Origin: Macrostomum lignano
Taxonomy: Eukaryota
NCBI GenBank assembly: GCA_002269645.1
Contig: NIVC01001181.1
Span: 186,001-250,000, forward strand
Direction of reading: 5' to 3'
Length of the DNA: 64,000 nucleotides
The notes under the pieces were generated by a model. It saw only the letters and a program-made list of their open reading frames with translations. It was not told the DNA's origin and ran no database searches. Below, one piece after another: positions 1-59,110 of this stretch. The translations under genes were made by a program, and so were the position numbers. Within the stretch, counting starts at the first letter, position 1. Every line of letters starts with the position of its first letter.

Positions 1-602
1 GACTGGGCACTGCAGATCAGTTGAGGCTAGATTATCAGTAGTAGTAGCACTAGTAGTTGCAGTAGTAGCTCGTAGTAGTAGTAATGGAAGTAGTAGTAGT
101 ACAAGTATTAGTAGAGTAGTAGTAGAGCAGTCGTAGGCGTAGTCGTAGTAGAGACGTACTGGTAAGCAGTTATTTGAAGTAGCCAGGCAGGCCACTAGTC
201 GCAGTTGGCGGCGTCTGGTCACAGATCGCCGCCTGCACAGCCCCTGGTCACAGGCGACTGGGCACTGCGGATCAGTTGAAGCTAGATTTTCAGTAGTAGT
301 AGCACTAGTAGTTGCAGTAGTAGTAGTAGTGGTAGTAGAGTAGTAGTAGTACAGTCGTAGTCGTAGCCGTAGTCGTAGTAGTGTCGTGCGTCTTAAATAT
401 TCAGCTGCAGAAATAGTACTCTTGCTTATCCCAAGTAGATTTTTGGCGGAGAATAGCTCGTATACGAAGATATTTTGTTGACAAACATGGCGAGCCTCAA
501 TAATAGTCCGGTCCTGGGTACAGATATTCATAAGGCAGTTTGAAACTGCAAACCACGCACTCGGAAGATATTGAAGGTTACCAGTTGTCGAATGTTCGAA
601 AA

Positions 603-643
603 AAACCGATATTTCGGCCCAGACTGGGCCTTCGTCAGGGTTT
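603..643 (-). ncRNA. Minimal type I hammerhead ribozyme, copy 1
   Basis: Minus strand reads AAACC-CTGACGA-A-GGCCCA-GTC-TGGGCC-GAAA-T-ATC-GGTTT. This gives stem I AAACC/GGTTT, a CUGANGA core, a 6-bp stem II, GAAA, palindromic AUAU in place of stem III, and an AUC cleavage triplet. Confidence 0.8.
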
Positions 644-2262
644 ATTTATTCGGGTTTAAAAACAAATATATTGGCAGTGAAGTTATTGTAACATAATTTC
701 AATATATATATATGCTACTTTTGGGGGTGCACTGAGCAGTGTTGAGTAAAGATGTGTACGTATAATTAGTTAAAAACGTGAGTTGAAGCACGCTGATTGG
801 TTAAAGATTGGCAGCTTAAAGCCTTGCACAAAAAATATTAAAGATGTTAGGTGCTATAGAAAAACAGATTTAGAGCGTAGAAGTGTATGAATAAGCATCT
901 TGAAAAGTTCAACAAATAAGTTATTTACGCCCGTAGAATTGAGAACAAATATTAAATTAAAACAGAGCACTGAGAACTTTTCAAAAAAAGTGCAAGTAAA
1001 TAGATGTTATTACATAAACAGTTGAGAACAAATATTAATTAAAACAGAGCACTCGCCATAAACAGTAAATAAATTGAGTCGCCAGGGCCACTAGTTGCAG
1101 TTGGCGGCGTCTGGTCACAGATCGCCGCCTGCACAGCCCCTGGTCACAGGCGACTGGGCACTGCAGATCAGTTGAGGCTAGATTATCAGTAGTAGTAGCA
1201 CTAGTAGTTGCAGTAGTAGCTCGTAGTAGTAGTAATGGAAGTAGTAGTAGTACAAGTATTAGTAGAGTAGTAGTAGAGCAGTCGTAGGCGTAGTCGTAGT
1301 AGAGACGTACTGGTAAGCAGTTATTTGAAGTAGCCAGGCAGGCCACTAGTCGCAGTTGGCGGCGTCTGGTCACAGATCGCCGCCTGCACAGCCCCTGGTC
1401 ACAGGCGACTGGGCACTGCAGATCAGTTGAGGCTAGATTATCAGTAGTAGTAGCACTAGTAGTTGCAGTAGTAGCTCGTAGTAGTAGTAATGGAAGTAGT
1501 AGTAGTACAAGTATTAGTAGAGTAGTAGTAGAGCAGTCGTAGGCGTAGTCGTAGTAGAGACGTACTGGTAAGCAGTTATTTGAAGTAGCCAGGCAGGCCA
1601 CTAGTCGCAGTTGGCGGCGTCTGGTCACAGATCGCCGCCTGCACAGCCCTGGTCACAGGCGACTGGGCACTGCAGATCAGTTGAGGCTAGATTATCAGTA
1701 GTAGTAGCACTAGTAGTTGCAGTAGTAGCTCGTAGTAGTAGTAATGGAAGTAGTAGTAGTACAAGTATTAGTAGAGTAGTAGTAGAGCAGTCGTAGGCGT
1801 AGTCGTAGTAGAGACGTACTGGTAAGCAGTTATTTGAAGTAGCCAGGCAGGCCACTAGTCGCAGTTGGCGGCGTCTGGTCACAGATCGCCGCCTGCACAG
1901 CCCCTGGTCACAGGCGACTGGGCACTGCGGATCAGTTGAAGCTAGATTTTCAGTAGTAGTAGCACTAGTAGTTGCAGTAGTAGTAGTAGTGGTAGTAGAG
2001 TAGTAGTAGTACAGTCGTAGTCGTAGCCGTAGTCGTAGTAGTGTCGTGCGTCTTAAATATTCAGCTGCAGAAATAGTACTCTTGCTTATCCCAAGTAGAT
2101 TTTTGGCGGAGAATAGCTCGTATACGAAGATATTTTGTTGACAAACATGGCGAGCCTCAATAATAGTCCGGTCCTGGGTACAGATATTCATAAGGCAGTT
2201 TGAAACTGCAAACCACGCACTCGGAAGATATTGAAGGTTACCAGTTGTCGAATGTTCGAAAA

Positions 2263-2303
2263 AAACCGATATTTCGGCCCAGACTGGGCCTTCGTCAGGG
2301 TTT
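2263..2303 (-). ncRNA. Minimal type I hammerhead ribozyme, copy 2
   Basis: Identical to copy 1. Confidence 0.8.
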
Positions 2304-3883
2304 ATTTATTCGGGTTTAAAAACAAATATATTGGCAGTGAAGTTATTGTAACATAATTTCAATATATATATATGCTACTTTTGGGGGTGCACTGAGCAGT
2401 GTTGAGTAAAGATGTGTACGTATAATTAGTTAAAAACGTGAGTTGAAGCACGCTGATTGGTTAAAGATTGGCAGCTTAAAGCCTTGCACAAAAAATATTA
2501 AAGATGTTAGGTGCTATAGAAAAACAGATTTAGAGCGTAGAAGTGTATGAATAAGCATCTTGAAAAGTTCAACAAATAAGTTATTTACGCCCGTAGAATT
2601 GAGAACAAATATTAAATTAAAACAGAGCACTGAGAACTTTTCAAAAAGAAGTGCAAGTAAATAGATGTTATTACATAAACAGTAAATAAATTGAGTCGCC
2701 AGGCAGGCCACTAGTTGCAGTTGGCGGCGTCTGGTCACAGATCGCCGCCTGCACAGCCCCTGGTCACAGGCGACTGGGCACTGCAGATCAGTTGAGGCTA
2801 GATTATCAGTAGTAGTAGCACTAGTAGTTGCAGTAGTAGCTCGTAGTAGTAGTAATGGAAGTAGTAGTAGTACAAGTATTAGTAGAGTAGTAGTAGAGCA
2901 GTCGTAGGCGTAGTCGTAGTAGAGACGTACTGGTAAGCAGTTATTTGAAGTAGCCAGGCAGGCCACTAGTCGCAGTTGGCGGCGTCTGGTCACAGATCGC
3001 CGCCTGCACAGCCCCTGGTCACAGGCGACTGGGCACTGCAGATCAGTTGAGGCTAGATTATCAGTAGTAGTAGCACTAGTAGTTGCAGTAGTAGCTCGTA
3101 GTAGTAGTAATGGAAGTAGTAGTAGTACAAGTATTAGTAGAGTAGTAGTAGAGCAGTCGTAGGCGTAGTCGTAGTAGAGACGTACTGGTAAGCAGTTATT
3201 TGAAGTAGCCAGGCAGGCCACTAGTCGCAGTTGGCGGCGTCTGGTCACAGATCGCCGCCTGCACAGCCCCTGGTCACAGGCGACTGGGCACTGCAGATCA
3301 GTTGAGGCTAGATTATCAGTAGTAGTAGCACTAGTAGTTGCAGTAGTAGCTCGTAGTAGTAGTAATGGAAGTAGTAGTAGTACAAGTATTAGTAGAGTAG
3401 TAGTAGAGCAGTCGTAGGCGTAGTCGTAGTAGAGACGTACTGGTAAGCAGTTATTTGAAGTAGCCAGGCAGGCCACTAGTCGCAGTTGGCGGCGTCTGGT
3501 CACAGATCGCCGCCTGCACAGCCCCTGGTCACAGGCGACTGGGCACTGCGGATCAGTTGAAGCTAGATTTTCAGTAGTAGTAGCACTAGTAGTTGCAGTA
3601 GTAGTAGTAGTGGTAGTAGAGTAGTAGTAGTACAGTCGTAGTCGTAGCCGTAGTCGTAGTAGTGTCGTGCGTCTTAAATATTCAGCTGCAGAAATAGTAC
3701 TCTTGCTTATCCCAAGTAGATTTTTGGCGGAGAATAGCTCGTATACGAAGATATTTTGTTGACAAACATGGCGAGCCTCAATAATAGTCCGGTCCTGGGT
3801 ACAGATATTCATAAGGCAGTTTGAAACTGCAAACCACGCACTCGGAAGATATTGAAGGTTACCAGTTGTCGAATGTTCGAAAA

Positions 3884-3924
3884 AAACCGATATTTCGGCC
3901 CAGACTGGGCCTTCGTCAGGGTTT
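3884..3924 (-). ncRNA. Minimal type I hammerhead ribozyme, copy 3
   Basis: Identical to copy 1. Confidence 0.8.
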
Positions 3925-4744
3925 ATTTATTCGGGTTTAAAAACAAATATATTGGCAGTGAAGTTATTGTAACATAATTTCAATATATATATATGCTACT
4001 TTTGGGGGTGCACTGAGCAGTGTTGAGTAAAGATGTGTACGTATAATTAGTTAAAAACGTGAGTTGAAGCACGCTGATTGGTTAAAGATTGGCAGCTTAA
4101 AGCCTTGCACAAAAAATATTAAAGATGTTAGGTGCTATAGAAAAACAGATTTAGAGCGTAGAGCTAACCCTAAATGCGCGAGCGTCTCCAATATTAGAGA
4201 TATACATCTATTCCTGTTCTGAGTTCACACGTCATTGAACCATAAATTCGCACATACAGATAGATCTGTCACAGGTATCTATCTGTTTGCGAAATTCCTA
4301 AGCTTGTCCAGTTTGCGTAATACCCTCAGGGGGGTTGCCGAGGGGTGTTGGGCCAGCCCAATAGCTCCAACCCCTCTAGACTAAAACCGAAAATGACTCG
4401 CGAAAGAATTTATAAGGGATGAGTAATCAAAAATCGCCCCCCCTTCCCAACCTAAACGTATTGAAGTGGCCATTCTTACAGCTTTAAGAATCTTTTAAAC
4501 CCCTTCTGGAAACCTTTGGAAAAGAGATTTAGACTGGAGCCGAGCTGAGGAAGACTGACCCCGGCCCATTGTGCAATCTGTGTCCACTCTTCATTCTCGG
4601 GCTTGAGTGGTTTCAAATTGCTATATAGAAAATTATTCTTCGGAGAGTTTTGAGGGACTGGAGTTTGGCGCTGGAGACCCTGGGTTGCGCAATGCGATCC
4701 GCTTGAGATAGAAAAGCTAAGGCTATTCAATATGCTATCTGTCT

Positions 4745-8184
<3,440 letters not shown>

Positions 8185-8260
8185 TTCATAAGGCAGTTTG
8201 AAACTGCAAACCACGCACTCGGAAGATATTGAAGGTTACCAGTTGTCGAATGTTCGAAAA

Positions 8261-8301
8261 AAACCGATATTTCGGCCCAGACTGGGCCTTCGTCAGGGTT
8301 T
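8261..8301 (-). ncRNA. Minimal type I hammerhead ribozyme, copy 4
   Basis: Identical to copy 1. Confidence 0.8.
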
Positions 8302-9626
8302 ATTTATTCGGGTTTAAAAACAAATATATTGGCAGTGAAGTTATTGTAACATAATTTCAATATATATATATGCTACTTTTGGGGGTGCACTGAGCAGTGT
8401 TGAGTAAAGATGTGTACGTATAATTAGTTAAAAACGTGAGTTGAAGCACGCTGATTGGTTAAAGATTGGCAGCTTAAAGCCTTGCACAAAAAATATTAAA
8501 GATGTTAGGTGCTATAGAAAAACAGATTTAGAGCGTAGAAGTGTATGAATAAGCATCTTGAAAAGTTCAACAAATAAGTTATTTACGCCCGTAGAATTGA
8601 GAACAAATATTAAATTAAAACAGAGCACTGAGAACTTTTCAAAAAGAAGTGCAAGTAAATAGATGTTATTACATAAACAGTAAATAAATTGAGTCGCCAG
8701 GCAGGCCACTAGTTGCAGTTGGCGGCGTCTGGTCACAGATCGCCGCCTGCACAGCCCCTGGTCACAGGCGACTGGGCACTGCAGATCAGTTGAGGCTAGA
8801 TTATCAGTAGTAGTAGCACTAGTAGTTGCAGTAGTAGCTCGTAGTAGTAGTAATGGAAGTAGTAGTAGTACAAGTATTAGTAGAGTAGTAGTAGAGCAGT
8901 CGTAGGCGTAGTCGTAGTAGAGACGTACTGGTAAGCAGTTATTTGAAGTAGCCAGGCAGGCCACTAGTCGCAGTTGGCGGCGTCTGGTCACAGATCGCCG
9001 CCTGCACAGCCCCTGGTCACAGGCGACTGGGCACTGCAGATCAGTTGAGGCTAGATTATCAGTAGTAGTAGCACTAGTAGTTGCAGTAGTAGCTCGTAGT
9101 AGTAGTAATGGAAGTAGTAGTAGTACAAGTATTAGTAGAGTAGTAGTAGAGCAGTCGTAGGCGTAGTCGTAGTAGAGACGTACTGGTAAGCAGTTATTTG
9201 AAGTAGCCAGGCAGGCCACTAGTCGCAGTTGGCGGCGTCTGGTCACAGATCGCCGCCTGCACAGCCCCTGGTCACAGGCGACTGGGCACTGCGGATCAGT
9301 TGAAGCTAGATTTTCAGTAGTAGTAGCACTAGTAGTTGCAGTAGTAGTAGTAGTGGTAGTAGAGTAGTAGTAGTACAGTCGTAGTCGTAGCCGTAGTCGT
9401 AGTAGTGTCGTGCGTCTTAAATATTCAGCTGCAGAAATAGTACTCTTGCTTATCCCAAGTAGATTTTTGGCGGAGAATAGCTCGTATACGAAGATATTTT
9501 GTTGACAAACATGGCGAGCCTCAATAATAGTCCGGTCCTGGGTACAGATATTCATAAGGCAGTTTGAAACTGCAAACCACGCACTCGGAAGATATTGAAG
9601 GTTACCAGTTGTCGAATGTTCGAAAA

Positions 9627-9667
9627 AAACCGATATTTCGGCCCAGACTGGGCCTTCGTCAGGGTTT
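9627..9667 (-). ncRNA. Minimal type I hammerhead ribozyme, copy 5
   Basis: Identical to copy 1. Confidence 0.8.
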
Positions 9668-10992
9668 ATTTATTCGGGTTTAAAAACAAATATATTGGCA
9701 GTGAAGTTATTGTAACATAATTTCAATATATATATATGCTACTTTTGGGGGTGCACTGAGCAGTGTTGAGTAAAGATGTGTACGTATAATTAGTTAAAAA
9801 CGTGAGTTGAAGCACGCTGATTGGTTAAAGATTGGCAGCTTAAAGCCTTGCACAAAAAATATTAAAGATGTTAGGTGCTATAGAAAAACAGATTTAGAGC
9901 GTAGAAGTGTATGAATAAGCATCTTGAAAAGTTCAACAAATAAGTTATTTACGCCCGTAGAATTGAGAACAAATATTAAATTAAAACAGAGCACTGAGAA
10001 CTTTTCAAAAAGAAGTGCAAGTAAATAGATGTTATTACATAAACAGTAAATAAATTGAGTCGCCAGGCAGGCCACTAGTTGCAGTTGGCGGCGTCTGGTC
10101 ACAGATCGCCGCCTGCACAGCCCCTGGTCACAGGCGACTGGGCACTGCAGATCAGTTGAGGCTAGATTATCAGTAGTAGTAGCACTAGTAGTTGCAGTAG
10201 TAGCTCGTAGTAGTAGTAATGGAAGTAGTAGTAGTACAAGTATTAGTAGAGTAGTAGTAGAGCAGTCGTAGGCGTAGTCGTAGTAGAGACGTACTGGTAA
10301 GCAGTTATTTGAAGTAGCCAGGCAGGCCACTAGTCGCAGTTGGCGGCGTCTGGTCACAGATCGCCGCCTGCACAGCCCCTGGTCACAGGCGACTGGGCAC
10401 TGCAGATCAGTTGAGGCTAGATTATCAGTAGTAGTAGCACTAGTAGTTGCAGTAGTAGCTCGTAGTAGTAGTAATGGAAGTAGTAGTAGTACAAGTATTA
10501 GTAGAGTAGTAGTAGAGCAGTCGTAGGCGTAGTCGTAGTAGAGACGTACTGGTAAGCAGTTATTTGAAGTAGCCAGGCAGGCCACTAGTCGCAGTTGGCG
10601 GCGTCTGGTCACAGATCGCCGCCTGCACAGCCCCTGGTCACAGGCGACTGGGCACTGCGGATCAGTTGAAGCTAGATTTTCAGTAGTAGTAGCACTAGTA
10701 GTTGCAGTAGTAGTAGTAGTGGTAGTAGAGTAGTAGTAGTACAGTCGTAGTCGTAGCCGTAGTCGTAGTAGTGTCGTGCGTCTTAAATATTCAGCTGCAG
10801 AAATAGTACTCTTGCTTATCCCAAGTAGATTTTTGGCGGAGAATAGCTCGTATACGAAGATATTTTGTTGACAAACATGGCGAGCCTCAATAATAGTCCG
10901 GTCCTGGGTACAGATATTCATAAGGCAGTTTGAAACTGCAAACCACGCACTCGGAAGATATTGAAGGTTACCAGTTGTCGAATGTTCGAAAA

Positions 10993-11033
10993 AAACCGAT
11001 ATTTCGGCCCAGACTGGGCCTTCGTCAGGGTTT
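10993..11033 (-). ncRNA. Minimal type I hammerhead ribozyme, copy 6
   Basis: Identical to copy 1. Confidence 0.8.
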
Positions 11034-11369
11034 ATTTATTCGGGTTTAAAAACAAATATATTGGCAGTGAAGTTATTGTAACATAATTTCAATATATATA
11101 TATGCTACTTTTGGGGGTGCACTGAGCAGTGTTGAGTAAAGATGTGTACGTATAATTAGTTAAAAACGTGAGTTGAAGCACGCTGATTGGTTAAAGATTG
11201 GCAGCTTAAAGCCTTGCACAAAAAATATTAAAGATGTTAGGTGCTATAGAAAAACAGATTTAGAGCGTAGAAGTGTATGAATAAGCATCTTGAAAAGTTC
11301 AACAAATAAGTTATTTACGCCCGTAGAATTGAGAACAAATATTAAATTAAAACAGAGCACTGAGAACTT

Positions 11370-12617
<1,248 letters not shown>

Positions 12618-14155
12618 TTCTTCAGTCTCTCTCACTACAAAGACTCATTCGCAGCCCACCTGTAATTAATGAAGTCACGTGTGTCCTGAGCTGCTTTCAT
12701 CTGTCAGGCAGACCTTGACTCCATGAAGAATTCGCCTTCTATAAAATTGCTCGAACTGTCCCTAATCCGCAAAGGCAAGCATTCTCAATTAGTCAGCTCA
12801 TCGTCTTTGATGCGATCGGATTCCCTAATAGTTGAAAAAATCAAAATCTGTTTTTTCCCTCTGTTCCTTTAGTATGGTCAGCTGATGATTAATGAAAATT
12901 GATTCCTCTGGTATGGAAGAAAATCTCTTTGGGAGATGATGTGGCAGCAGGGATTAAGAGATACAGGTAACGCTTTTGATCTACAAAATTAGGTTAGTTA
13001 GATGAGTTTAATCAAGTTGAACTGCTTCAAGTTCACGGAAAAGTGCCGCAGTCCGGAAAAAAAACAAATCTTCTGATGAAAATTAGTGCTAGTGAAGGCT
13101 TCGAAAAAATGTCATTTCTGTTCGGGTTATATGAATAGATAAAAACCACAAAAATGGATGCTTTACAGAAATGTCACAAAACATACTTAATAGTCAAGGA
13201 CAGCATAGACTGGAGAGAGTTGCCCTTGCTTGATAAAGCCAGTGCGCTTTACCAGGCACCTGACTAGATTTCAATTTCGGCCCATCCTACTAGAAATGCC
13301 GAACGGCAGGGCTCCAGAGTGTTTGCGTGAAAACTTTCGGCAACGGAAGCAGACAGCTCGGCGCCAGGCTTTGGTGCTGCTTTGGGAGTTTTCTCTGCTT
13401 TTCTGGTCGCCGCGGCGCCGGCTGCTGCTGCTGCTGCTGCTGCTGCTGCGGATTCTGGCTTTCCCAGGTGCCACTTCTCTCTCACCCTCTCTGCCCCCCT
13501 CTCTGTCTCTCTATTTTCTCTGAGTCATCCGCGGTGCACAAGGCTGATATCACTATTCGGGGATAAAACACACACACACTAAATGCTGCCCTGTATCCAA
13601 ATCCCCCTACAATATTGCACCTGTCGCTCTTTGTGCCCGCTGAGTGCTGAAGCCCCCAGCTAACACTATGCATAAATAGCCGCCTATGTTTTGTAATTTA
13701 CCGTGGTATTGGAAATCGAGTGCAGAGTGTTTTCACTTTGACTTGTGATTTGGGTATTTGCTTTTTTGTTTAACACCCGACTGCCCGAGCCGAATCGCCT
13801 CTAGCTCTCGATAAAATTGTGTTACTCACTCCGTTCCCAGTTTGAAAAATTTTGGGTTGTTTTCAATCAAAACAGTTTTCTGACTGTGTGAGTGAAGGAT
13901 GGCTGGCGGCCACACAGTGGGACTTGTTATAACACGGCTTATTAGCCATGCATTAATAGGCTTTAGCCTCCCTGAAGGGGATTAGCGAGAAATTTTCAAT
14001 TCCCCTATGGGAGTTGTTTACAGCCAGGTGTTAGTATCTGAGGGGCCCACCTGGCTGCGAAGCAGGCATCCCGCCGTCTGTTACAAATGACTGGATGGGT
14101 CGTTTCTTGGGATTTAACAAAGACATCTGTGCCGACAGCTAGACGGACAAACACG

Positions 14156-32335: not shown

Positions 32336-32576
32336 CGGACATCCCTGAAAATCCTAATCGATCGATCATTTATATATCATAAGAAATCAATAGTCGCGAC
32401 ATTCAAACTCTTAGAAATCTTATATCAAAGTTTTGGTCCACCGCAATTTAAATTTTCCAAAGTTCCCAATGTCCTAAAGAAAATTTCGTCGAAGTCAAAA
32501 AACGCGACGGCTAAGTACCCGATGGACTATGTAAATGAACGATTCGAATCTCAAGTCTCTTCATCATTCATTACAG

Positions 32577-32940
32577 CGCTGCTACCGAGGCCCAGAGACC
32601 ATCTGCTGTGTCCAGGGTCTCCAGTTCGACACGGTCTACCAGGCCCGAGTCAAGGCGCACAACACCGCCGGAGAGTCAGTCTACAGCGATTTTGTTAAAC
32701 TGCGCACCGCCGGTCGGGCTTTTTTTCAATTCTCCCCAGAAGAATCGCACGCGGAGCTGGTATTCACTAATCAGGGCATGACCGTCACTTCCGTGTCATT
32801 GGAGGAACGAATCGCAGTGTGTACAACCGGCTTCTCTAGAGGGGTTCACTACTGGGAGTTCACTGTCGACAGATACGACGACAAAGGAGATCCAGGATTT
32901 GGCGTTGCTCGTTTGGACTGTCGCAAAGATGAAAAACTTG
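32577..32940 (+). CDS. TRIM9: TRIM9/TRIM67-like, FN3 end and PRY/SPRY start
   Basis: Contains [27 protein letters not shown] and [28 protein letters not shown]. Bounded by ttacag and GTGAG; 364 nt, phase 0/1. Confidence 0.93.
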
Positions 32941-33011
32941 GTGAGAAAATTTTCTTAATGGTTATTCCTGATTATTGGGTAGTTGATTAGTCTTTGTGTG
33001 AGTTTATTGTT

Positions 33012-37946: not shown

Positions 37947-38234
37947 ACTCGAGCTAGGCAGGCTATAAAGAGACTGGTATAGAACTTTTCCATATAATCC
38001 ATCCTTGAGTTCGTGACCGAAAATCTACTGCTATAACAGCTAACCAGCAGAGAAAAACGATGCATCAATTTTGCATTCGACTCTGATCTTTCTATAGGCT
38101 GCATGCTGTAGTTGCTACTATTACTGATTCAGTGATACTTCTACTACTTCTATTATTAAGTAGTAAGCAGCAGAGTTTTTTTATAATATTATCGAGCTTG
38201 GAGAAACTCAGTCATTGAGAAATACGAGTGCATA

Positions 38235-39288
38235 GCTTTTTGCAGCCTATTTGGGCTTACGGCATTTAATTTAATCCAAGATACGTTTGCCAATGTAAAG
38301 GAGCTTTTGTCTATGACTCTATGGTCACAAGGATGGCACAGCAGCATTTAATTTAGTCCAACAAGAATCAATTTGGTACATAGCGGCTCTAGATTTCAAT
38401 TTAGACATGACTGACAAAAGCAGTGAGGACGGAAGCGATGGGGGGGTTGTCTGGAAGTGAGAATTCATGGTAATGGCCATAGACACGAGCGGCTGCATGC
38501 TGTAGTGGCCCCCTCGTGTCTGTGGTCATTATCATGTTTTCTCACTTTCAGCTAACTTCATTGGTCAATTTGTCCATCAGGATCCGAGTGGGAACGGGGA
38601 ATTGGGGTGTGGGGGCAAAGCCCCCACTTACAACCATAGACTATTTTATTTTACGCTCATAGACTCGTTTGTTTTCTAATATTATATCCCGGTAAATTGC
38701 TTTATTGTCAATTTCGAACAATGACCGGTCATTGCTTGAATTTCATTGACTTAACGTAAATTACCATAGAAATTTTGAAGAATGCTTCATTTGCAACTGC
38801 TGCGGAGGAGCAAGATCAGCCCCATAATCGTGGACAATATGCTAAGCTTGTGATCGAAGCACTCGATAGAGGTGAACACCCAATGGACATCGCTAGGTTG
38901 CTGAATGCCAAAAAAGACAATTTACAGCATCCGTCAGCGGGTTGAAACCACTAGCAGAAGAGATCGTCTGCGAAGGGGCGGCAATCTCCAAAGCAAGTTG
39001 TTAGAACCCCAGGTCCAACTGCTATTGGATGCAATTGAGAAAAACCCTCTGTTGACGTTGCAGTAAATGCAGCAGAAGTTGAACCAACAGTTTCCAGTTG
39101 GTTGTCAGTATTTCGACTATCAGCAGAGCTCTGGAAAAGCGACAACACTGAAACTTCTTGGAAGAGATGCTGACATTCCAGTGGTACGCAACAGTCCTCA
39201 GACGCGGTTGCGAGAAGGCTCGTTTATATTGGCAAACGTATCTTGAATTAAATTAAATGCGCGTAAGCCCATATGGGCTGCAAAAAGC
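38235..39288 (+). mobile_element. Degenerate Tc1/mariner-IS630-like DNA transposon (1054 bp) with ~65-bp TIRs and flanking TA
   Basis: TIRs at 38235-38299 and 39223-39288 (GCTTTTTGCAGCC...GGGCTTACG...ATTTAATTTAAT.CAAGATACGTTTGCCAAT), with TA on both sides. A frameshifted HTH-type N-terminus lies at ~38800-39220 (VIEALDRGEHPMDIARLL / TIYSIRQR / QVQLLLDAIEKNPLLTL / VSISTISRAL). No DDE region. Confidence 0.8.
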
Positions 39289-39374
39289 TATACTATTTCT
39301 TCTTTCGAAGTACAATATAATTCAAATACGTTTCATTTTTAATGGACTTCCATTACACACCACACCAAAAACAG

Positions 39375-39679
39375 GCCGCGATAACCGAGGCTGGTCAATG
39401 TACATTGACTTCAAGCGCAGCTGGTTCTTGCACAACGGAGAGCACGCCGAACGATGCGACGGAGGCATTGCCAAAGGCAGCATTGTCGGGGTGCGTCTAG
39501 ACTGCGACAAAGGCACTTTGTCCTACTATGTTAACGATGAGCCACACGGACCAGTGGCTTTCCTCGACTTAAAAGGCACTTTCTATCCGGCCGTTAACCT
39601 CAACCGTAATGTGCAGCTCACTCTACATCCGGGGCTAGAGGTGCCATCGGAGTCAGACGACAGTTCCGAGGAGAATTAA
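39375..39679 (+). CDS. TRIM9: TRIM9/TRIM67-like, terminal SPRY exon
   Basis: GRDNRGWSMYIDFKRSWFLHN...GGIAKGSIVGVRLD...FYPAVNLNRNVQLTLHPGL matches the TRIM9 C-terminus. Phase 1 acceptor acag; stop TAA at 39677-39679. Confidence 0.94.
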
Positions 39680-44398: not shown

Positions 44399-44599
44399 CA
44401 TAGAAATAGACTTTCCGTGACAATATTTGCGTTCTCCGGGATTTTATTTGGTAATATTCAATAATATCCCGTAAAGTCTTTATGTCTATGGTTTATACGA
44501 GATTACACATGCCTTTTTCGGGAGTTATTTTCATAAATCCCTCGGGCCTCAGGCCCTCGTGATTTATACAAATAACTCCCTCAAAAGGCACGTTTAATC
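44399..44599. mobile_element. Compound palindromic (MITE-like) element
   Basis: 48-bp imperfect inverted arms at 44501-44599 centred on GGGCC-TCA-GGCCC, plus a second inverted pair at ~44399-44491. Confidence 0.5.
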
Positions 44600-45164
44600 T
44601 GATACACAAATCGAGTTGTCTATGGCTTGCTTTCCGGCCCCGAGTTAATTCAACACTTGGCTATAGAATTCTATGGGCCGTTCCGTTTTGCATGCCCACT
44701 GTTACATATAGCACGACCAAAGCAATACTAGAAGTTAGTTGATACTTGTTAGAATTTCAATGGATTAGCGCTTATAGCAGAACTTTCTGTGGACTTTCAA
44801 TATCAAAAGTTAAATTCGAACTTTCACCGGTCGGACTACCAGAATCTGATTCTAGGAAACGACATACATTGATTCTCTCAAGATAAAAATTGTATCCCAA
44901 GGAAGGTTTTTAAGGATACACCAGCTGGGATCAGTCAAAATAATACCCTACACTGCAAAGCCTCTCTGCAGACTTCATGTTTACAGATTACCTAAATAAA
45001 AAATTAATAGAAGTCTTGAATTCACAGCTCACAGAATTCAATTAAAATATGAATTACAAAAAATATCCAACTTAAATTGAATGCCATCCAGCTAGGGAAA
45101 ATAACAGAGCGCCAATTCGGCATCCGTGGTAGAAATTCAGGATGCAAAACTCAAAGTTGACGTG

Positions 45165-45608
45165 CTGGCCAGCCACCCAGATCCTCAGTTGCTGGGCCAG
45201 CCTCCCAGATCCTCAGTTTCTAGGCCAGCCACCCAGATCCTCAGTTGCTGGGCCAGCCTCCCAGATCCTCAGTTGCTGGGCCAGCCTCCCAGATCCTCAG
45301 TTGCTGGGCCAGCCTCCCAGATCCTCAGTTGCTGGGCCAGCCTCTCAGATCCTCAGTTGCTGGGCCAGCCTCCCAGATCCTCAGTTGCTGGGCCAGCCTC
45401 TCAGATCCTCAGTTGCTGGGCCAGCCTCCCAGATTCTCAGTTGCTGGGCCAGCCTCTCAGATCATCAGTTGCTGAGCCAGCCTCTCAGATCATCAGTTGC
45501 TGGGCCAGCCTCCCAGATCCTCAGTTGCTGGGCCAGCCTCCCAGATCCTCAGTTGCTGGGCCAGCCTCCCAGGACCTCAGTTGCTGAGACAGCCTCCCAG
45601 ATCCTCAG
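45165..45608 (+). repeat. 28-bp minisatellite GGGCCAGCCTCCCAGATCCTCAGTTGCT
   Basis: About 15 copies. Confidence 0.96.
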
Positions 45609-45629
45609 AAAAAACAAATGAACACTCAC

Positions 45630-46153
45630 ATTGGTCTGCTGTAACTCCGGAGTTAATTTACGCATAGCCGTGACAGCTAATGAGTCCACTTGGTCCCGGC
45701 TCAGTCCCAGACTCAAACGCGGCTCGGAAGCCCAACAGGCCAACAGTTCGCAGAGCGCGTCGGCTCGACAATCCTTGGCCAGGTAGCGAACTGATAAATC
45801 AGCGATTCGATCTGCCGGCAGAGGCACGTCGGAGTGCAGGCGGGTGAGCAAGCTCAGACCGTCGGCAATCACAGGTGAGGACAGCAGCACTAGCAGGCCC
45901 AAGTCTACTAGCGCTTCAGCGCGATTTCTCGATAGCAACGTTGGCAATGGGCTGGCCAGACGGAGGGACGAGATCGGCTTCCTGTCAGCGATTGCCGCCT
46001 TGCCCAGGTAGGCCACAACGTCCAGGTGAAGCTGCAGACAGCGGATGAGGCTGCGCAGCTCCTTCTCGGGCAGGCGGAGAATTCTGGCAGCTTCGGGGCC
46101 GCCGGCGGCCGGGTCCTGCTGGGTCAGGGACTTCATGGCCTGGCGGAGGTGGC
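45630..46153 (-). CDS. ZFYVE26: ZFYVE26/spastizin exon (HLRQAMKSL...LQLHLDVVAYL...PLPTLL...LQQTN)
   Basis: Acceptor tccgcag and donor GTGAGT; 524 nt, phase 1/0. Matches DHLKIYL...LQLQMEVTRFL...LPLPTLFG. Confidence 0.85.
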
Positions 46154-46251: not shown

Positions 46252-46769
46252 GCTGAGAATCTGGGAGGCTGGCCCTGCAACTGAGAATCTGGGAGGCTGG
46301 CCCTGCAACTGAGAATATGGGAGGCTGGCCCAGAAACTGACACTCTGGGACCCTGGCCCAGCAACTGAGGATCTGGGAGGCTGGCCCAGGAACTTGGGAT
46401 CTGGGAGGCTGGCCCAGGAACTTGGGATCTGGGAGGCCAGCCAAGAAACTGGGGATCTGGGAGGCCAGCCAAGAAACTGGGGATCTGGGAGGCTGGCCCA
46501 GCAACTGAGGATCTGGGAGGCTGGCCCAGCAACTGAGGATCTGGGAGGCTGGCCCAGCAACTAACACTCTGGGAGGCTGGCCCAGCAACTGAGGATCTGA
46601 GAGGCTGGCCCAGGAACTTGGGATCTGGGAGGCCAGCCAAGAAACTGGGGATCTGGGAGGCTGGCCCATCAACTGATGATCTTAGAGGCTGGCCCAGCAA
46701 CTGAGGATCTGGGAGGCTGGCCCAGCAACTGGCACTCTGGGAGGCTGGTCTAGCAACTGAGGATCTGGG
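46252..46769 (-). repeat. Inverted array of the same 28-bp minisatellite (CTGGGAGGCTGGCCCAGCAACTGAGGAT)
   Basis: The unit is the reverse complement of the 45165-45608 unit. Confidence 0.96.
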
Positions 46770-46853
46770 AAGATAAAGACTTAACCAGATTAACAGAAAA
46801 TTTGAACTAGACAGAGCGCAAAAACTGACACAGCTGTCACCATAGCAACCCAC

Positions 46854-47307
46854 CAATAGCCCTCTCTAGCGGCTCCTTCCTACTCGCAGCAGCTAGCTGA
46901 GCGTAGCTGGTCGCACCGCGCAGGTGAAACTCGTGCACGCAGGTCATGGCGGCTCGAACGTGGTCCCCGGTTCGACACTGCAGCTGGTAGAGCGGCTGAA
47001 ACAGGCCGGCCCTGTCTAAACAGCCGCAGATTCTGGGCAGGCACGGCTGCCAGAAATCCGGTTGTTGGTCCAAGGCTCTCTCTAGGAGCAGCACAAGCAC
47101 TTCTGCGTTGCCAGACTGAATCGCTGGATTAACCAGGCCCTCCACTATCGGCTCAATGGATACCGAGTGTTCAACGCAGAAGGCCAACGCAGATTCTAGT
47201 CGTTTATGACGCATAAGAAAGTTTAGCCGGCTAAGGTAAGTGCCGTAACGGTGCAGGTAGTATTGGCACTCAGACTCTAAGTCAAACTGGCAAAACCGTC
47301 GCAATTG
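46854..47307 (-). CDS. ZFYVE26: ZFYVE26/spastizin exon (ECQYYLHRYG...DHVRAAMTCVHEF...SYAQL)
   Basis: Matches human ECLFYLHNYS...DQVRAAMTCIRFF...SYTEL. Acceptor ccacag and donor GTGGGT; 454 nt, phase 0/1. Confidence 0.9.
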
Positions 47308-53352: not shown

Positions 53353-53442
53353 AGCCAGTAGTTCATGCAATTTTTAACTTTACTCGCACTTGTCAGCTAT
53401 TGACTACAAGTTAATCGCAACACCATCGCATTTCTTCCACAG

Positions 53443-54224
53443 AAGCTGCATCAAGAATCTGAGCATCGAATGGGAGGATTGCTCCGGCTGCGGTCCATTG
53501 CGTCTGGACGAGGCCTCGTGGTGGAGAGCAACAATCGTGCTAGTGATTTCTCTGCTAGCAGTGCCAACCAACCTGCTAGTAATAGTGGTTGTCAAACAGA
53601 CGCCAGCTCTGCACAATAATCAGTGCATCTACATGGTGGCGCTGGCTATTAGCGATCTTAGCGCCGGTCTGTGCTTTCTATGCACATCGTTTCGCTACGC
53701 TGTGACAGGCTACGGGCCAAGGAGCTGGGTAGAACTGGAACTCGGAGCTTGGATGTACTACCTGGCGTTGACCACCGGACTAATACTGACGGTGAGCATC
53801 GGACTGGACAAATTGCACCAGATTAACTGGCCATACAGCTACGACCGAGTCATGTCCAGACGCAAAGTGATTGGCATCGTTCTCGGCATCTGGCTGGGCA
53901 TAGCTGTGCTCAGTTGCTTGCCAACACGTATAGTACCAATCAGCGGTTACTATTACGAGTTTACTAGCAGCACTCTAATGTTTAATACTAGAGCGTGTAA
54001 AGGCGAAAATGAACCCGATATGAGTCTGTTAATAGTCCGCATCTCTCTGTTCCTGTTCCTAATTCTGGTACTGTTCGGCGGCTACGGAACTATATTAGTC
54101 ATTACACGACGCCACGTGAGACGAATGCGCAGCATGCAGCACTGCAGTGTACCGCTGGCTCCGACTAGCAGCAAAGAGGACGGACAGGCTCAGGAATCGG
54201 CTCTCGACACTGCTGAGACAAAAG
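53443..54224 (+). CDS. Class A (rhodopsin-like) GPCR, TM1-TM5 exon; the 3' boundary is uncertain
   Basis: TM1 PTNLLVIV, TM2 LAISDL, TM3 ending LDKL (DRY position), TM4 GIW..P, TM5 ..GGYGTI. Likely acceptor ttccacag at 53441-53442. There is no upstream in-frame ATG, so a 5' exon is missing. The donor could be at 54224 (G/GTCTTC) or earlier (CAC/GTGAGA). Confidence 0.85.
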
Positions 54225-54634
54225 GTCTTCTTTTATTTCATCTGGGTCCGTTGTCAGTTCCATTTTTCTAGTTGGGACAAAATTTTTCCTAAGTAGTAAA
54301 TACCAAAATTATCCGGACATTAAGATATAGGAAAGGTCCTGGAAGATAGGAAACTTTTACGTCAGCCGTACTTTCTAACTTTCGAATAAAAAACAATATT
54401 ACAAGTTCATTGTTCAATTTTTAGTTTCTGGTGGCCATGCCTCAAAATTTGATTAAAGCAGTTAAAAAAAATAAAACATCTTTTTCCCAAAAAGCAAATG
54501 CCTCGTCATCTAAACTTTGAACGCATCTTTTATCAGAATATTCGATCACAACCAAAGTACGAACGTGTGATATCATGATTCTAGAATTCAGCAAACTATC
54601 ATTCATCTCCCCACACTCCTACATAATAATAAAG

Positions 54635-57735: not shown

Positions 57736-57795
57736 CAAGGTCCAAAATCAAATATAGAAACTGAGCATTTAAAAACTCTAATCACCTCTACTTAC

Positions 57796-58370
57796 CTTCA
57801 AGCACCTGTCAAACCGTTCTCTAGCCTTTTCAACGCCGTAAAGACTCAAATCTCGGACACCCATGGCAAACCACACGCCAGTTGGATCCAAATTGCATTT
57901 AGTTGACACCTGCAATGCCAAGTCCAACCGTTCATGCCGAACCAATCGATCTCGAAGCAATTGCAAAGTACGCTGATTATTCAAGGTAGACAATTTTGGT
58001 AGATCGTGATAATTGTGCCGAACTAGAAGCGACATGAGCTCCACCTGGCTCAGGTAGAGTTCGCATAGTTCCACGCCGCCCTGATTATTGGCCGTAGTGC
58101 AAGCAACTTTGGCGTGAAATAGCAGCGACCTGATCGTGTCCAACAATAGGGGATAGTCCACTTCGGGATTCGGGGTGCCAGATCGGTCAACTGGGCTCAG
58201 GTAAGCTGACAGCTGGTCGCACAATTGCAACAGGTGCTCGGCTGGTTCCGTGTGCATTTCGAGTAGAGCAATGGCTAAACTGGCGCTGGGGCTTTGCTCG
58301 TAGTAGAAATCTTCTCTTAGACTGTCGTTAAGATCTTCGTTGTCTGGCGACAGAGTCCACTGGCTGCGAT
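57796..58370 (-). CDS. ZFYVE26: ZFYVE26/spastizin exon following the FYVE domain (WTLSPDNEDLNDSLREDFYYEQSPSASLAIALL...NPEVD...ARERFDRCLK)
   Basis: Matches human WILD...VRSEFYYEQAPSASLCIAIL...NPEVDAGLL...STKTGLD...AREKFSRCLK. Acceptor ccccag and donor GTAAGT. Confidence 0.92.
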
Positions 58371-58572
58371 CTGGGGTGTGTGTAAGGTTAAGTTTTTGGA
58401 TATTTTTTAAATAGGGAATTTAGCATCGATTAGGGAGTAATGCAGCGATTGTAATATGACTTATGCTTGTATATGATTTCTATTTTTATAGTTAGAGGCA
58501 TTACTTGCCCATTCCGAAGACTCCCCTGAGCAGGCAAACAAGCGCGCGGATACGTACGCAGTCATACGCACA

Positions 58573-58881
58573 GTGGGTTATAGTCTAGCCTAGTGGTTAA
58601 AGCGTCGGACTCACGACTGAAAGGTCTGGAGTTCGACTCTCGACTCACTCGGAACAATTTTTACCCTTGAGCAAGACACTTAACTCTGCATTGCTTCAGT
58701 TCACCCAGCTGTAAAATGGGTGCCAGCATTAGCTGGGGTAATTGAGGGTGTGTGGCGACCCCCCAGTCCTTGGACTGAACAGCCGTACGCAGCCTTCAGA
58801 TGCGCCGCGCAATAGCTGCGGCTGAGCTGTCGGTTGCACATCTCCCATTAGGCCAGGCGTAATGAATTATTATTATTATTA
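58573..58881 (+). mobile_element. tRNA-derived SINE with a CORE-like central domain and (ATT)n tail
   Basis: A box TAGCCTAGTGG at 58586 and B box GAGTTCGACTC at 58629. Positions 58664-58720 read CCTTGAGCAAGACACTTAACTCTGCATTGCTTCAGTTCACCCAGCTGTAAAATGGG, similar to the MIR CORE as recalled (CCTTGGGCAAGTTACTTAACCTCTCTGTGCCTCAGTTTCCTCATCTGTAAAATGGG). The tail lies at 58866-58881. Confidence 0.8.
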
Positions 58882-59110
58882 TCATCCTACGTAAGGCACA
58901 CACTAACACAGGAGTGTACAACATCCCTAACTTTATTTATCGTTGGGCATGTACACTTCACTGTGCCTTGGGGTCAAGATAATCGCACGAGCAGAGCCAA
59001 GCCGAGATTCCAATTTAATCCCAAATTAATGTGACTGCACTGCACTTGGAATCGAGCCTGGGCCGCTGGCGCATCAGGGCGCCGCTTTAGACCACTAAGC
59101 TACAGTCGCC
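58882..59110 (-). mobile_element. Second tRNA-derived SINE-like element, tail-to-tail with the first
   Basis: Minus-strand head GGCGACTGTAGCTTAGTGGTCTAAAGCGGCG...CCCAGGCTCGATTCCAAG with A box at 59092-59102 and B box at 59048-59058. It does not form a clean tRNA cloverleaf. The 3' extent is approximate. Confidence 0.65.

Follow-up and report, generated by a model that had tools for sequence, protein, structure and literature searches.

What kind of element repeats a small ribozyme motif six times on one strand of a Macrostomum lignano contig, and how did its copies come to lie where they do? These questions are raised by a 64-kb stretch of genomic DNA (hereafter the window), which we consider together with five further places on five contigs of the same assembly (GCA_002269645.1) at which the element is found: NIVC01002743.1 (L001), NIVC01000001.1 (L002), NIVC01000269.1 (L003), NIVC01001962.1 (L004) and NIVC01001007.1 (L005), the last carrying a distinct copy that is ~80% identical and has its own 5′ end. 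The observations are best explained by a young, non-autonomous, retrozyme-like retroelement family of this species derived from Penelope-like elements (PLEs), a reading that we hold to be probable.

Six copies of a candidate minimal hammerhead

The minus strand of the window carries six identical motifs, AAACC-CUGACGA-A-GGCCCA/GUC/UGGGCC-GAAA-UAUC followed, after the predicted cut, by GGUUU. With their helix I arms included, they lie at 603–643 (predicted cut 608/607), 2263–2303 (2268/2267), 3884–3924 (3889/3888), 8261–8301 (8266/8265), 9627–9667 and 10993–11033, and successive motifs are spaced by 1660, 1621, 4377, 1366 and 1366 nt. The 31-nt core, CTGACGAAGGCCCAGTCTGGGCCGAAATATC, has six exact matches in the window and no mismatches, all on the minus strand (608–638, 2268–2298, 3889–3919, 8266–8296, 9632–9662 and 10998–11028), where none is expected by chance. 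Our own descriptor of a minimal hammerhead (a CUGANGA box, no or one bulged nucleotide, GAAA, UH, a palindromic segment for helix III, and helices I and II each of 4 bp or more) matches only these six loci in the window and nothing on either strand of 400 sequences of 64 kb simulated with a first-order Markov model; an analytic estimate puts a motif of such quality at ~6e-11 per position. Likewise, a looser descriptor applied to the window and the five related loci (~175 kb, both strands) matches copies of the element only. The six minus-strand hammerhead motifs reported in the earlier note are thus confirmed by both the exact core match and the descriptor. Rfam 15 returned no match, whether the gathering score was applied or E was relaxed to ≤ 10. 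Rfam hammerhead models presuppose a helix III hairpin, and the miss is expected because the motif has none.

Independently of any descriptor, the minimal hammerheads of PLEs are distinguished by an extra nucleotide between A9 and G10.1, pairing of G10.1 with C11.1, a helix II that is long where helix I is short, and a palindrome at 15.2–16.2 (Cervera & de la Pena 2014, PMC4209133). All four hallmarks are present here, and the sequence therefore supports the earlier identification of the motif as a genuine minimal hammerhead of type I and of the PLE kind. The likeness extends to the type I topology, the CUGANGA and GAAA boxes, C17, the single unpaired nucleotide between A9 and G10.1, the lengths of helix II (6 bp) and helix I (5 bp), the lack of a defined loop 1, and the replacement of the helix III hairpin by a palindromic AUAU that could pair only with a second copy; the setting in direct repeats is also shared, and the family is known from flatworms (Schistosoma). 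In contrast to PLE minimal hammerheads, those of the element lie 1.4–1.9 kb apart with no reverse transcriptase (RT) reading frame between them, and its young copies are identical, whereas the PLE ribozymes are usually very variable within a genome.

Across the window and the five loci there are 27 hammerhead copies, all but three of them identical. The variants are 1-nt deletions in L001 (~19535) and L004 (~17617) and a G-to-A change in L005; each weakens helix II with no compensating change. Hence the copies, the young ones identical and the three variants uncompensated, contain no covariation supporting the ribozyme. The identity of the six copies in the window is uninformative about selection because whole units there are 99.7–100% identical, and in L005 the 400 nt preceding the hammerhead are at least as well conserved as the hammerhead itself.

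Two insertion blocks in the window

The earlier note took the six motifs to form a single tandem array, but they belong to two separate insertion blocks, 11369–8180 (block B) and 4162–<1 (block A), both on the minus strand. The 4377-nt interval between motifs contains a 3.4-kb (GATA)n tract (4745–8184) and 582 bp of unrelated sequence (4163–4744). Block B (3190 nt) comprises a 5′-truncated unit of 372 nt (11369–10998), two identical full units of 1366 nt (10997–9632 and 9631–8266) and the initial 86 nt of one more unit (8265–8180), so that the motif at 8261–8301 is its last ribozyme. Block A comprises a 5′-truncated unit of 274 nt (4162–3889), units of 1621 nt (3888–2268) and 1660 nt (2267–608), and the start of another (607–1); it runs beyond the window and its 3′ end lies outside. 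Downstream of block B the microsatellite at 4745–8184, its target or flank, reads (TATC)n on the hammerhead strand, and at the 5′ end the block adjoins a 1.25-kb (TAGA)n microsatellite (11369–12617), past which unique DNA starts. The unique, non-element stretch at 4163–4744, which separates the microsatellite from the 5′ end of block A, is probably target DNA, because this layout matches that of a duplicated 373-bp stretch at L004 (stretch X, below).

Two of the window's units, U4 and U5, are the same over 1366 nt, and the remaining units vary solely by indels and by the number of an internal 255-bp repeat. That inter-unit differences are nearly all indels, several of them in homopolymers, and that a 530-bp gap lies within the L001 array, could suggest that the arrays are artefacts of assembling noisy long reads across repeats. 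We regard this as the least credible of the explanations weighed here: the same architecture recurs on several contigs with differing flanks, 5′ ends and unit numbers, and long reads far exceed the unit length.

Unit anatomy and the orphan reading frame

Over all loci covered, units measure 1.37–1.88 kb (1366–1876 bp), which bears out the earlier remark that the unit is longer than those of described animal retrozymes, given as 150–450 nt (Cervera & de la Pena 2020, PMC7229834) and 51–972 bp (Li, Clavereau & Pollet 2026 preprint, 10.64898/2026.07.22.740005). The GC content is low (43–44%). Each unit contains an AT-rich, pLTR-like “tail” of 440 nt with the hammerhead at its end (9632–10071, minus strand), an 86-nt 3′-terminal region and an internal 255-bp minisatellite, an (ACT)n-like tract plus a GC-rich segment, whose copy number sets the unit length: 2.7 copies at 10058–10772 (minus strand) and at 8692–9406, and 3.7 at 2694–3663 and at 1086–2042. 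Unit lengths within one block are sometimes unequal (L002, L004), and simple rolling-circle copying of one circle is therefore insufficient without later slippage. We consider the tail pLTR-like because, with the hammerhead, it is the best conserved part (~90–100%) of the diverged L005, in which the internal repeat has been remodelled to 214 bp. A stem-loop, GCAGUU-UCA-AACUGC (unit positions 58–72; 10926–10940, minus strand), lies 10–14 nt upstream of the element's 3′ end and is retained in L005 through a U–A to U–G change.

The unit also holds an orphan reading frame of 347 codons (9878–10921, minus strand), with its first ATG at unit position 77. The open frame around it, 385 codons long and taking up 76% of the unit, starts 38 nt ahead of the cut site, and the same ORF recurs at 8512–9555 and 2514–3812. 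This invites the thought that the locus is a tandemly duplicated gene for a repetitive Thr/Cys-rich protein, with the hammerhead in its leader. None of 3000 shuffles gave so long a frame, changes in the number of 255-bp repeats (85 codons) preserve it, and NCBI and UniRef include proteins from these loci. Against such a gene, the frame has no Pfam domain and no homologues other than element copies among 5.8 billion word-indexed and 1.84 billion exhaustively searched proteins, and its translation is that of a degenerate (ACT)n tract in shifting frames, with no signal peptide evident by eye. Furthermore, the frame is shifted in unit 1, and L005 has neither the ATG nor the long frame, its 214-bp repeat not being a multiple of three. 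We find a gene of this kind very improbable. As the earlier note had stated, the window encodes no recognisable RT or endonuclease, a result that covers reading frames of at least 120 aa; since RT and GIY-YIG endonuclease are absent, the element is non-autonomous.

The insertion footprint

Read on the hammerhead strand, the layout of a block is (ATCT)n, a 5′-truncated unit, a number of full units, the first 86 nt of the next unit, and (ATCT)n again. All seven readable 3′ ends, which represent five independent events (window block B, L002, L003, L004 and L005), fall at unit position 86 and are followed by (ATCT)n, whereas the seven 5′ ends are all different. In block B this terminus, reading ...CTTATGAATATCT and then (ATCT)n, lies at 8180–8185 (minus strand) and shares the 5-nt microhomology TATCT with the microsatellite; the equivalent internal positions are 522, 2182, 3803, 9546 and 10912. 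We infer that reverse transcription starts here, at a distance of 86 nt beyond the ribozyme cut. In the unit, ten sites match the microsatellite over 5 nt or more and only one of them is ever used; microhomology alone thus does not explain the choice of site. At L004, the 11.3-kb block is flanked by a perfect target-site duplication of 1,203 bp, made up of 830 bp of microsatellite and 373 bp of unique DNA (stretch X), a geometry expected if the first nick fell inside the microsatellite; the 5′ junction there has seven filler bases. The fixed 3′ end, the variable 5′ ends and the duplication together are what target-primed reverse transcription leaves behind, with a hammerhead-strand RNA as the template. 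With the dispersal to several contigs and the insertion into microsatellites, they support the earlier note's proposal of a non-autonomous element mobilised through RNA.

It is worth considering whether unequal crossing-over between microsatellites could have produced these arrays as ordinary satellite or segmental duplications, with the hammerhead-like motif a chance match. Some copying has plainly occurred at the DNA level: blocks 1 and 2 of L002, and likewise blocks 1 and 2 of L003, are duplicates with common 5′ ends and internal rearrangements. The near-identity of units in a genome extremely rich in tandem repeats is also what such a process would give. However, it is contradicted by the chance figures for the motif given above, by the single invariant 3′ end set against seven different 5′ ends, by the use of one microhomology site in ten, and by the target-site duplication and filler bases. 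The loci are, moreover, dispersed with unrelated flanks: those of the window, L001, L003 and L004, the four compared, are mutually non-homologous (the flanks of L002 are all repeat). As a general account this seems to us highly unlikely.

A different retrotransposition route deserves somewhat more weight, while still being unlikely: the element could be a SINE-like passenger of a microsatellite-specific non-LTR element (LINE), or carry an (AUCU)n tail of its own, with the hammerhead-like motif an inert relic. At every site the invariant 3′ end adjoins (ATCT)n in the same orientation, and microsatellite frequently lies on both sides; similar flanks are left by R1/R4-type LINEs that target microsatellites and by SINEs with tails. 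The uncompensated ribozyme variants would also suit a relic. Yet at L004 the microsatellite and the 373 bp beyond it pre-existed and were duplicated, and the repeat is therefore target and not tail. Likewise, a bulged nucleotide together with a palindromic AUAU in a minimal hammerhead is characteristic of PLEs, the 86 nt separating cut and terminus match a PLE start site, and PLEs typically insert as multi-unit tandems (PMC8557442). We therefore return to the PLE-derived reading, on which the element is young and non-coding and, as PLEs do, uses RNA to copy itself into microsatellites, here (GATA)n.

Predicted folding, cleavage and mechanism

The isolated 41-nt hammerhead RNA is predicted to form helices I and II with the catalytic core unpaired (−14.3 kcal/mol). 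An AUAU/AUAU helix III is computed to be unstable by itself (+1.6 kcal/mol), potential partner ribozymes are 1.4–1.9 kb from each other, and in the predicted fold of a longer context helix I is out-competed and absent. The structure of the long transcript is not unusual (z = −0.7), in contrast to rod-like retrozyme circRNAs. It is plausible that the predicted ribozyme can cut itself (probably weakly, and as a dimer or helped by protein) and that monomers circularise. Each genomic block continues straight across the ribozyme adjoining its 3′ end, so that every inserted copy must have been templated across a ribozyme that was uncut or re-ligated. In vitro, insertion by the one PLE tested did not require cleavage (PMC11167929), a result that would also accommodate the inert motif of the LINE/SINE alternative.

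The following mechanism can be proposed. The RNA intermediate would be the hammerhead strand, as the polarity of truncation indicates. An RT/endonuclease provided in trans, which the ribozyme type and the geometry of cut site and start site suggest to be a PLE RT/GIY-YIG protein, would nick the (GATA)n.(TATC)n microsatellite. Synthesis of cDNA would begin at one internal site in the RNA, UAUCU at unit positions 82–86, able to pair with the microsatellite primer strand and located at the 86-nt distance 3′ of the cut site; it would go back across the hammerhead, continue along a multimeric or circular template for another one to seven units, and end at a variable point. Downstream cleavage of the second strand would give rise to the target-site duplication, which would be invisible if it fell inside the microsatellite.

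Comparison with known elements

The geometry resembles that of Poseidon PAc of Anolis carolinensis, in which the ribozyme cuts at ORF position +26 and a stem-loop contains the start of reverse transcription at +111 to +118, 85–92 nt farther 3′ (Frangieh et al. 2024, PMC11167929). In both, the 3′ boundary lies inside the repeat unit at a like distance from the cut and adjoins a stem-loop, and the frame is open across the ribozyme (the PAc ORF starts in stem II), although the element's start site has 5 nt of homology to its target and PAc starts without homology. More generally, partial tandems and 5′ truncation are features of PLEs, whose hammerhead sits in the pLTR and whose preferred targets are microsatellites (Craig et al. 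2021, PMC8557442). The element shares the head-to-tail partial or multiple tandems, the frequent 5′ truncation, the hammerhead in a repeated pLTR-like part and the target bias. It differs in encoding neither RT nor GIY-YIG endonuclease, in targeting (GATA)n rather than AT-rich DNA, (TA)n or (CA)n, in lacking at its loci the 30–40-bp “tail” signature or variant of PLEs, and in the 1.2-kb length of one target-site duplication.

With metazoan non-LTR retrozymes the element shares non-autonomous tandem repeats whose units each carry a single type I hammerhead on one strand, low GC content, tandem copies that fit multimeric or circular RNA templates, and proposed mobilisation by PLE machinery; an origin of animal retrozymes from PLE pLTRs is argued for in the 2026 preprint (10.64898/2026.07.22.740005). 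Besides the greater unit length, it is unlike them in its ribozyme, which is of the minimal PLE type with neither loop 1–loop 2 contacts nor a helix III hairpin, in its 255-bp minisatellite and long orphan reading frame, and in an RNA that is not predicted to be rod-like. Of the earlier label, retrozyme/Penelope-like, the PLE-type hammerhead stands, while the canonical loop–loop type that defines metazoan retrozymes does not apply. Finally, the endonuclease-deficient PLEs (Athena/Coprina, Terminons) attach to telomeric repeats (PMC8557442); the element differs in that its target is internal (GATA)n rather than a chromosome end and its complementarity is only 5 nt, but in both the hammerhead adjoins a short 3′ sequence that is complementary to a simple repeat and able to prime reverse transcription by annealing.

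A minimal hammerhead motif in six identical copies

The minus strand of the window reads AAACC-CUGACGA-A-GGCCCA-GUC-UGGGCC-GAAA-UAUC|GGUUU at positions 603–643, and the 31-nt core of this motif recurs on the same strand with 0 mismatches, its six copies lying at 608–638, 2268–2298, 3889–3919, 8266–8296, 9632–9662 and 10998–11028 (successive spacings of 1660, 1621, 4377, 1366 and 1366 nt). The six identical minus-strand hammerheads that the earlier note had picked out are thus borne out, as is its reading of helix III as no more than the palindrome AUAU. All six carry the conserved core CUGACGA ... GAAA ... U-C (C3-U4-G5-A6-N7-G8-A9 ... G12-A13-A14 ... U16.1-H17), arranged in the type I order with a 5-bp helix I (AAACC/GGUUU) and a 6-bp helix II (GGCCCA/UGGGCC) closed by the loop GUC, and the minimum free energy fold of the 41-mer consists of these two helices around an open core (−14.3 kcal/mol).

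Such a motif is not expected by chance. A relaxed minimal-hammerhead descriptor, which asked for both core boxes, U-H, a palindrome at helix III and at least 4 bp in each of helices I and II while tolerating a bulge, matched only these six loci in the window and matched nowhere among 400 simulated 64-kb windows; analytically, a motif of the observed quality is estimated to arise at ~6e-11 per position, well under once per gigabase genome. A looser descriptor that also allowed the U3-A8 core variant matched this element only in ~175 kb comprising the window and related loci. Detection by Rfam, suggested in the earlier note as a check, failed: Rfam 15 returned no family at gathering score in the whole window or at E≤10 in positions 1–12000, a silence that is expected because the motif lacks a helix III hairpin. 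The rigid pattern CTGANGA-N17-GAAA had its sole match at 45217, a chance occurrence within a minisatellite.

Comparison with known ribozymes places the motif firmly, as far as sequence can, among hammerheads of the minimal type found in Penelope-like elements (PLEs). The minimal hammerheads of metazoan PLEs have a long helix II, a helix I of 4–5 bp without a clear loop 1, an extra nucleotide between A9 and G10.1, a conserved G10.1-C11.1 pair, and a 15.2–16.2 palindrome in place of the helix III hairpin (PMC4209133). The window motif shows all of these features, including the bulged A, the G...C pair closing helix II and the AUAU palindrome, whereas canonical retrozyme hammerheads, with their loop–loop contacts and short helix III hairpin (PMC7229834), differ from it in that it has neither that hairpin nor a closed loop 1; the assignment to the PLE type follows from these two observations.

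How active the ribozyme might be is a separate matter. Pairing of AUAU with AUAU is possible, at a nearest-neighbour energy of +1.6 kcal/mol and between partner ribozymes at least 1366 nt apart, and when contexts of 241 and 670 nt are folded in silico, helix II is kept and helix I displaced. Published minimal hammerheads cleave poorly in vitro (PMC4209133), and cleavage by the hammerhead of PAc, the Poseidon PLE of Anolis carolinensis, requires the element protein (PMC11167929). An AUAU/AUAU helix that is unstable by itself, the distant partners, the displaced helix I and the precedent of poor cleavage would all count against efficient activity.

Two blocks of long repeat units

The earlier note described the six hammerheads as one tandem array; mapping with head and tail probes and BLAST with whole units resolve them instead into two blocks, both on the minus strand. 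Block B (11369–8180) begins with a 372-nt 5′-truncated unit, continues through two full ones and breaks off 86 nt into a third, and is preceded by a 1.25-kb (TAGA)n tract. Block A (4162 to <1) opens with 274 nt leading up to a hammerhead and continues past the edge of the window. Between the blocks lie a 3.4-kb (GATA)n tract (4745–8184) and, beside it, 582 bp of unrelated sequence, such that block A has the layout microsatellite, 582 bp, block, the same as at the related locus L004. A comparison of variant patterns between the two window microsatellites, made for a hidden target-site duplication, was ambiguous.

Read from the predicted cut site on the hammerhead strand, each unit consists of a ~285-nt “head”, a 255-bp minisatellite present in 2.6–4.7 copies and composed of a degenerate (ACT)n tract and a GC-rich segment, and an AT-rich 440-nt “tail” that ends in the hammerhead. 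The block B units U4 and U5 are identical over 1366 nt, the only departures in U1 and U2 being the number of 255-bp copies, a local duplication of 44 bp and small indels. Units measure 1366, 1621, 1660 or 1876 bp; as a rule, with exceptions, those of one block have the same length and those of another block a different one. The GC-rich segment of every 255-bp repeat (for example at 10580–10680) contains the motif CTGTGACCAG twice as well as the inverted repeat GGCGGCG...CGCCGCC, and L005, the diverged copy, retains both features. The U1 tail (1022–1057) holds a 34-nt copy of nearby sequence between the 10-bp repeat ACTGTTTATG, and in the L003 tail (10870–10882 and 13429–13441) 47 nt are deleted and an 11-nt filler is present; both are small, local rearrangements that resemble template switching.

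The hammerhead strand of the unit is open for 385 codons in a frame that begins 38 nt before the cut site and has its first ATG at unit position 77. That this frame is a genuine coding gene is an unlikely reading: none of 3000 shuffles contained one as long, which speaks for it, but it has no Pfam domain, its homologues in a protein search and an exhaustive HMMER search were element copies only, it runs through the degenerate triplet repeat in changing frames, a frameshift disrupts it in U1, and L005 lacks it altogether, having neither the ATG nor a repeat length divisible by three. A search for a parent PLE reading frame with the 54 N-terminal residues gave no match, with a query that missed the element's own proteins as well. 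The frame is therefore probably a by-product or a recent relic. No reverse transcriptase (RT) or endonuclease was recognised among the window ORFs of at least 120 aa, in keeping with what the earlier note had said.

Further copies in the M. lignano assembly

Copies of the element elsewhere in GCA_002269645.1 (NIVC01..., identified in papers as the Mlig_3_7 assembly of Macrostomum lignano) were reached through the 347-codon orphan frame within the unit: two by way of proteins, two more from the cluster of those proteins, and one diverged copy by exhaustive search. They lie on NIVC01002743.1 (L001), NIVC01000001.1 (L002), NIVC01000269.1 (L003), NIVC01001962.1 (L004) and NIVC01001007.1 (L005). 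Flanks were compared for the window, L001, L003 and L004; they have only short dispersed repeats in common, and these four are therefore separate sites. That the four are homeologues from the known genome duplication is ruled out by the same unrelated flanks. L002 has no non-repeat flank. One dispersed repeat, at ~58494–59103 of the window, is common to the L003 and L004 flanks at 81–94% identity.

L005 is ~80% identical overall and clearly a distinct copy, with an internal repeat of 214 bp and a position between (TCTA)n tracts. Its tail and hammerhead are 90–100% conserved, its head ~80% and its repeat ~78%; because the tail is kept best, the part that resembles the repeated terminal portion of a PLE (the pLTR) and carries the ribozyme is the constrained part of the element. 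When L005 is compared with the window copies, conservation of the hammerhead itself is not distinguishable from that of the 400 nt upstream. Of the 27 hammerhead copies in the window and L001–L005, 24 are identical; helix II has a 1-nt deletion in two others, and the last carries a G-to-A change giving a C·A mismatch. In this sample, so young as to say little on the matter, there is no covariation or compensatory change, the three variants weakening helix II without compensation, and the six identical ribozymes of the window are uninformative about selection because the units as wholes are nearly identical.

Two of these loci carry further peculiarities. At L002, a 1.2-kb hAT-like MITE (7514–8740) sits within a 255-bp repeat, with terminal inverted repeats that start CAGTGTTGGGCAA and an 8-bp target-site duplication, CTTACCAG. 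At L001 (10001–16085), the annotated protein P0012 joins upstream host-gene exons to the first AG of a 5′-truncated block and ends in the tail, as though the hammerhead strand of the element had been exonised.

The insertion footprint

On the hammerhead strand, the blocks share one form: (ATCT)n or unique DNA, a 5′-truncated unit, zero to six full units, the next unit as far as nucleotide 86, and (ATCT)n. All seven readable 3′ ends (window 8180; L002 3520 and 12996; L003 11340 and 13899; L004 17732; L005 11151) fall at one nucleotide, ...CTTATGAATATCT|ATCTATCT..., and represent five independent events, since two pairs among them are DNA-level duplicates. Ten sites in the unit match the microsatellite over 5 nt or more (for example TATCT at 38 and 136, and ATCTAT at 968), and the insertions use only the one at 82–86. 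The seven 5′ ends, by contrast, are all different. At each of six places the element lies in (GATA)n in the same orientation, and orientation and phase are alike at every 3′ junction.

Because the 3′ ends are fixed and the 5′ ends ragged, the hammerhead strand would be that of the RNA intermediate; and because every block reads through the hammerhead beside its 3′ end, the template was either an uncut multimeric RNA or a re-ligated circular one. L004 provides a target-site duplication: the microsatellite (830 bp) and unique DNA (373 bp) that lie 3′ of the block recur in front of it with 100% identity. The upstream microsatellite there is longer than the downstream one, at 1770 bp, and the 5′ junction has 7 filler bases. 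This layout is the outcome that target-primed reverse transcription predicts for a first nick inside the microsatellite and a second 1.2 kb downstream, and since the duplication includes the microsatellite, (GATA)n was present at L004 before the insertion. The footprint as read from these genomic copies argues strongly for mobility.

Relationship to Penelope-like elements and retrozymes

It is informative to set this footprint beside that of the PLEs, which form partial tandems, are frequently 5′-truncated, carry a hammerhead in the pLTR and prefer microsatellites (PMC8557442). The element shares the partial and multiple tandems, the 5′ truncation, the hammerhead in the repeated terminal part and the bias toward insertion in microsatellites. 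In PAc, the hammerhead cuts 26 nt into the ORF, and reverse transcription begins in a stem-loop 111–118 nt into it, which is 85–92 nt past the cut; insertion does not require hammerhead cleavage (PMC11167929). The terminus of the element is 86 nt past the predicted cut, and a 6-bp stem-loop at unit positions 58–72 is kept in L005 through a U-A to U-G change, such that the distance from RT start to cut corresponds closely in the two (86 nt against 85–92 nt), in both cases near a stem-loop. By analogy, this match in geometry may reflect a shared internal RT start. The optional “tail” extension of 30–40 bp known from PLEs was not seen, all 3′ ends lying at one nucleotide.

Unlike an autonomous PLE, the element has no recognisable ORF in the window for an RT with a GIY-YIG endonuclease, and for want of either activity it is not one. 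With metazoan non-LTR retrozymes it shares a tandem repeat, one type I hammerhead per unit and the absence of an RT, but its ribozyme is minimal rather than canonical and its units measure 1366–1876 bp, against 150–450 nt, up to 972 bp, in the reported cases (PMC7229834; 2026 preprint), so that the unit is indeed as unusually long for a retrozyme as the earlier note had supposed. From these sequence features, the element probably behaves like a non-autonomous PLE. A 2026 preprint (10.64898/2026.07.22.740005) regards animal retrozymes as PLE derivatives, and on that derivation an element of this kind is to be expected. In the searchable literature, “Macrostomum” and “hammerhead ribozyme” did not occur together in any paper, and nothing relevant came up for Macrostomum with Penelope.

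Significance and the flanking (GATA)n arrays

M. lignano thus gains a clear case of a non-autonomous element that bears a hammerhead; the element is very young and probably still active, and the species is presented in a bioRxiv preprint (10.1101/151654) as a laboratory flatworm open to transgenesis, which would allow direct tests of ribozyme cleavage, circular RNA and trans-mobilisation. The genomic copies lend in vivo support, from a distant phylum, to two PLE features hitherto demonstrated in vitro with a single lizard element: a fixed internal RT start ~86 nt past the cut, and insertion that needs no prior ribozyme cut. With them, retrozyme-like tandem elements now reach unit sizes of 1.4–1.9 kb, and surveys that set a ceiling of 1 kb on the repeat period or rely on Rfam will miss such families. 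Finally, they offer a natural example of strict (GATA)n targeting and of target-site duplication on the kilobase scale.

The RT of PLEs is the closest relative of telomerase RT, which invites the speculation, one we regard as very improbable, that the element RNA may also act as a telomerase-like template that builds or lengthens the flanking (GATA)n arrays. A PLE RT primed on a GATA end paired to UAUCU at 82–86 would copy and slip repeatedly before moving on, and this slippage would leave kilobase-long, near-pure (GATA)n arrays flanking every copy. The arrays that adjoin the element run from 0.57 to >7.8 kb, and two element-free GATA arrays at the same loci measure 0.12 and 0.23 kb. The longer element-adjacent arrays and the uniform phase of the junctions are compatible with such a role; preferential insertion into long (GATA)n arrays explains the same observations equally well.

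Other features of the window

Beyond the element, positions 12618–64000 hold minisatellites in 22 arrays, unrelated to one another and each at least 300 bp long (periods of 4–206 bp). These arrays make up 37% of this sequence and occur among the exons and around them at intervals of ~0.5 kb; a similar minisatellite-rich appearance marks the flanks of L001, L003 and L005. In a masked self-BLAST, the spacers among the window arrays showed no shared homology, which rules out that these arrays are one element family with conserved spacers. A 28-bp minisatellite occurs at 45163–45608 and 46253–46770, in opposite orientations and ~650 bp apart, flanking an exon-like minus-strand ORF (45549–46136). 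Other exon-like minus-strand ORFs, at 46837–47304 and 57778–58257, have no Pfam match. On the plus strand, exon-like ORFs with FN3 and SPRY domains (32535–32990 and 39257–39679) have TRIM9/TRIM67-like nearest relatives at up to 67% identity, and an ORF at 53390–54271 encodes a rhodopsin-family GPCR (Pfam 7tm_1, E = 1.5e-17). The arms of a 77-bp inverted repeat pair (38232–38307 and 39215–39291) are ~1 kb apart, and the right one reaches into the beginning of the SPRY ORF; two palindromes of ~100 bp lie at 38446–38556 and 44500–44600.
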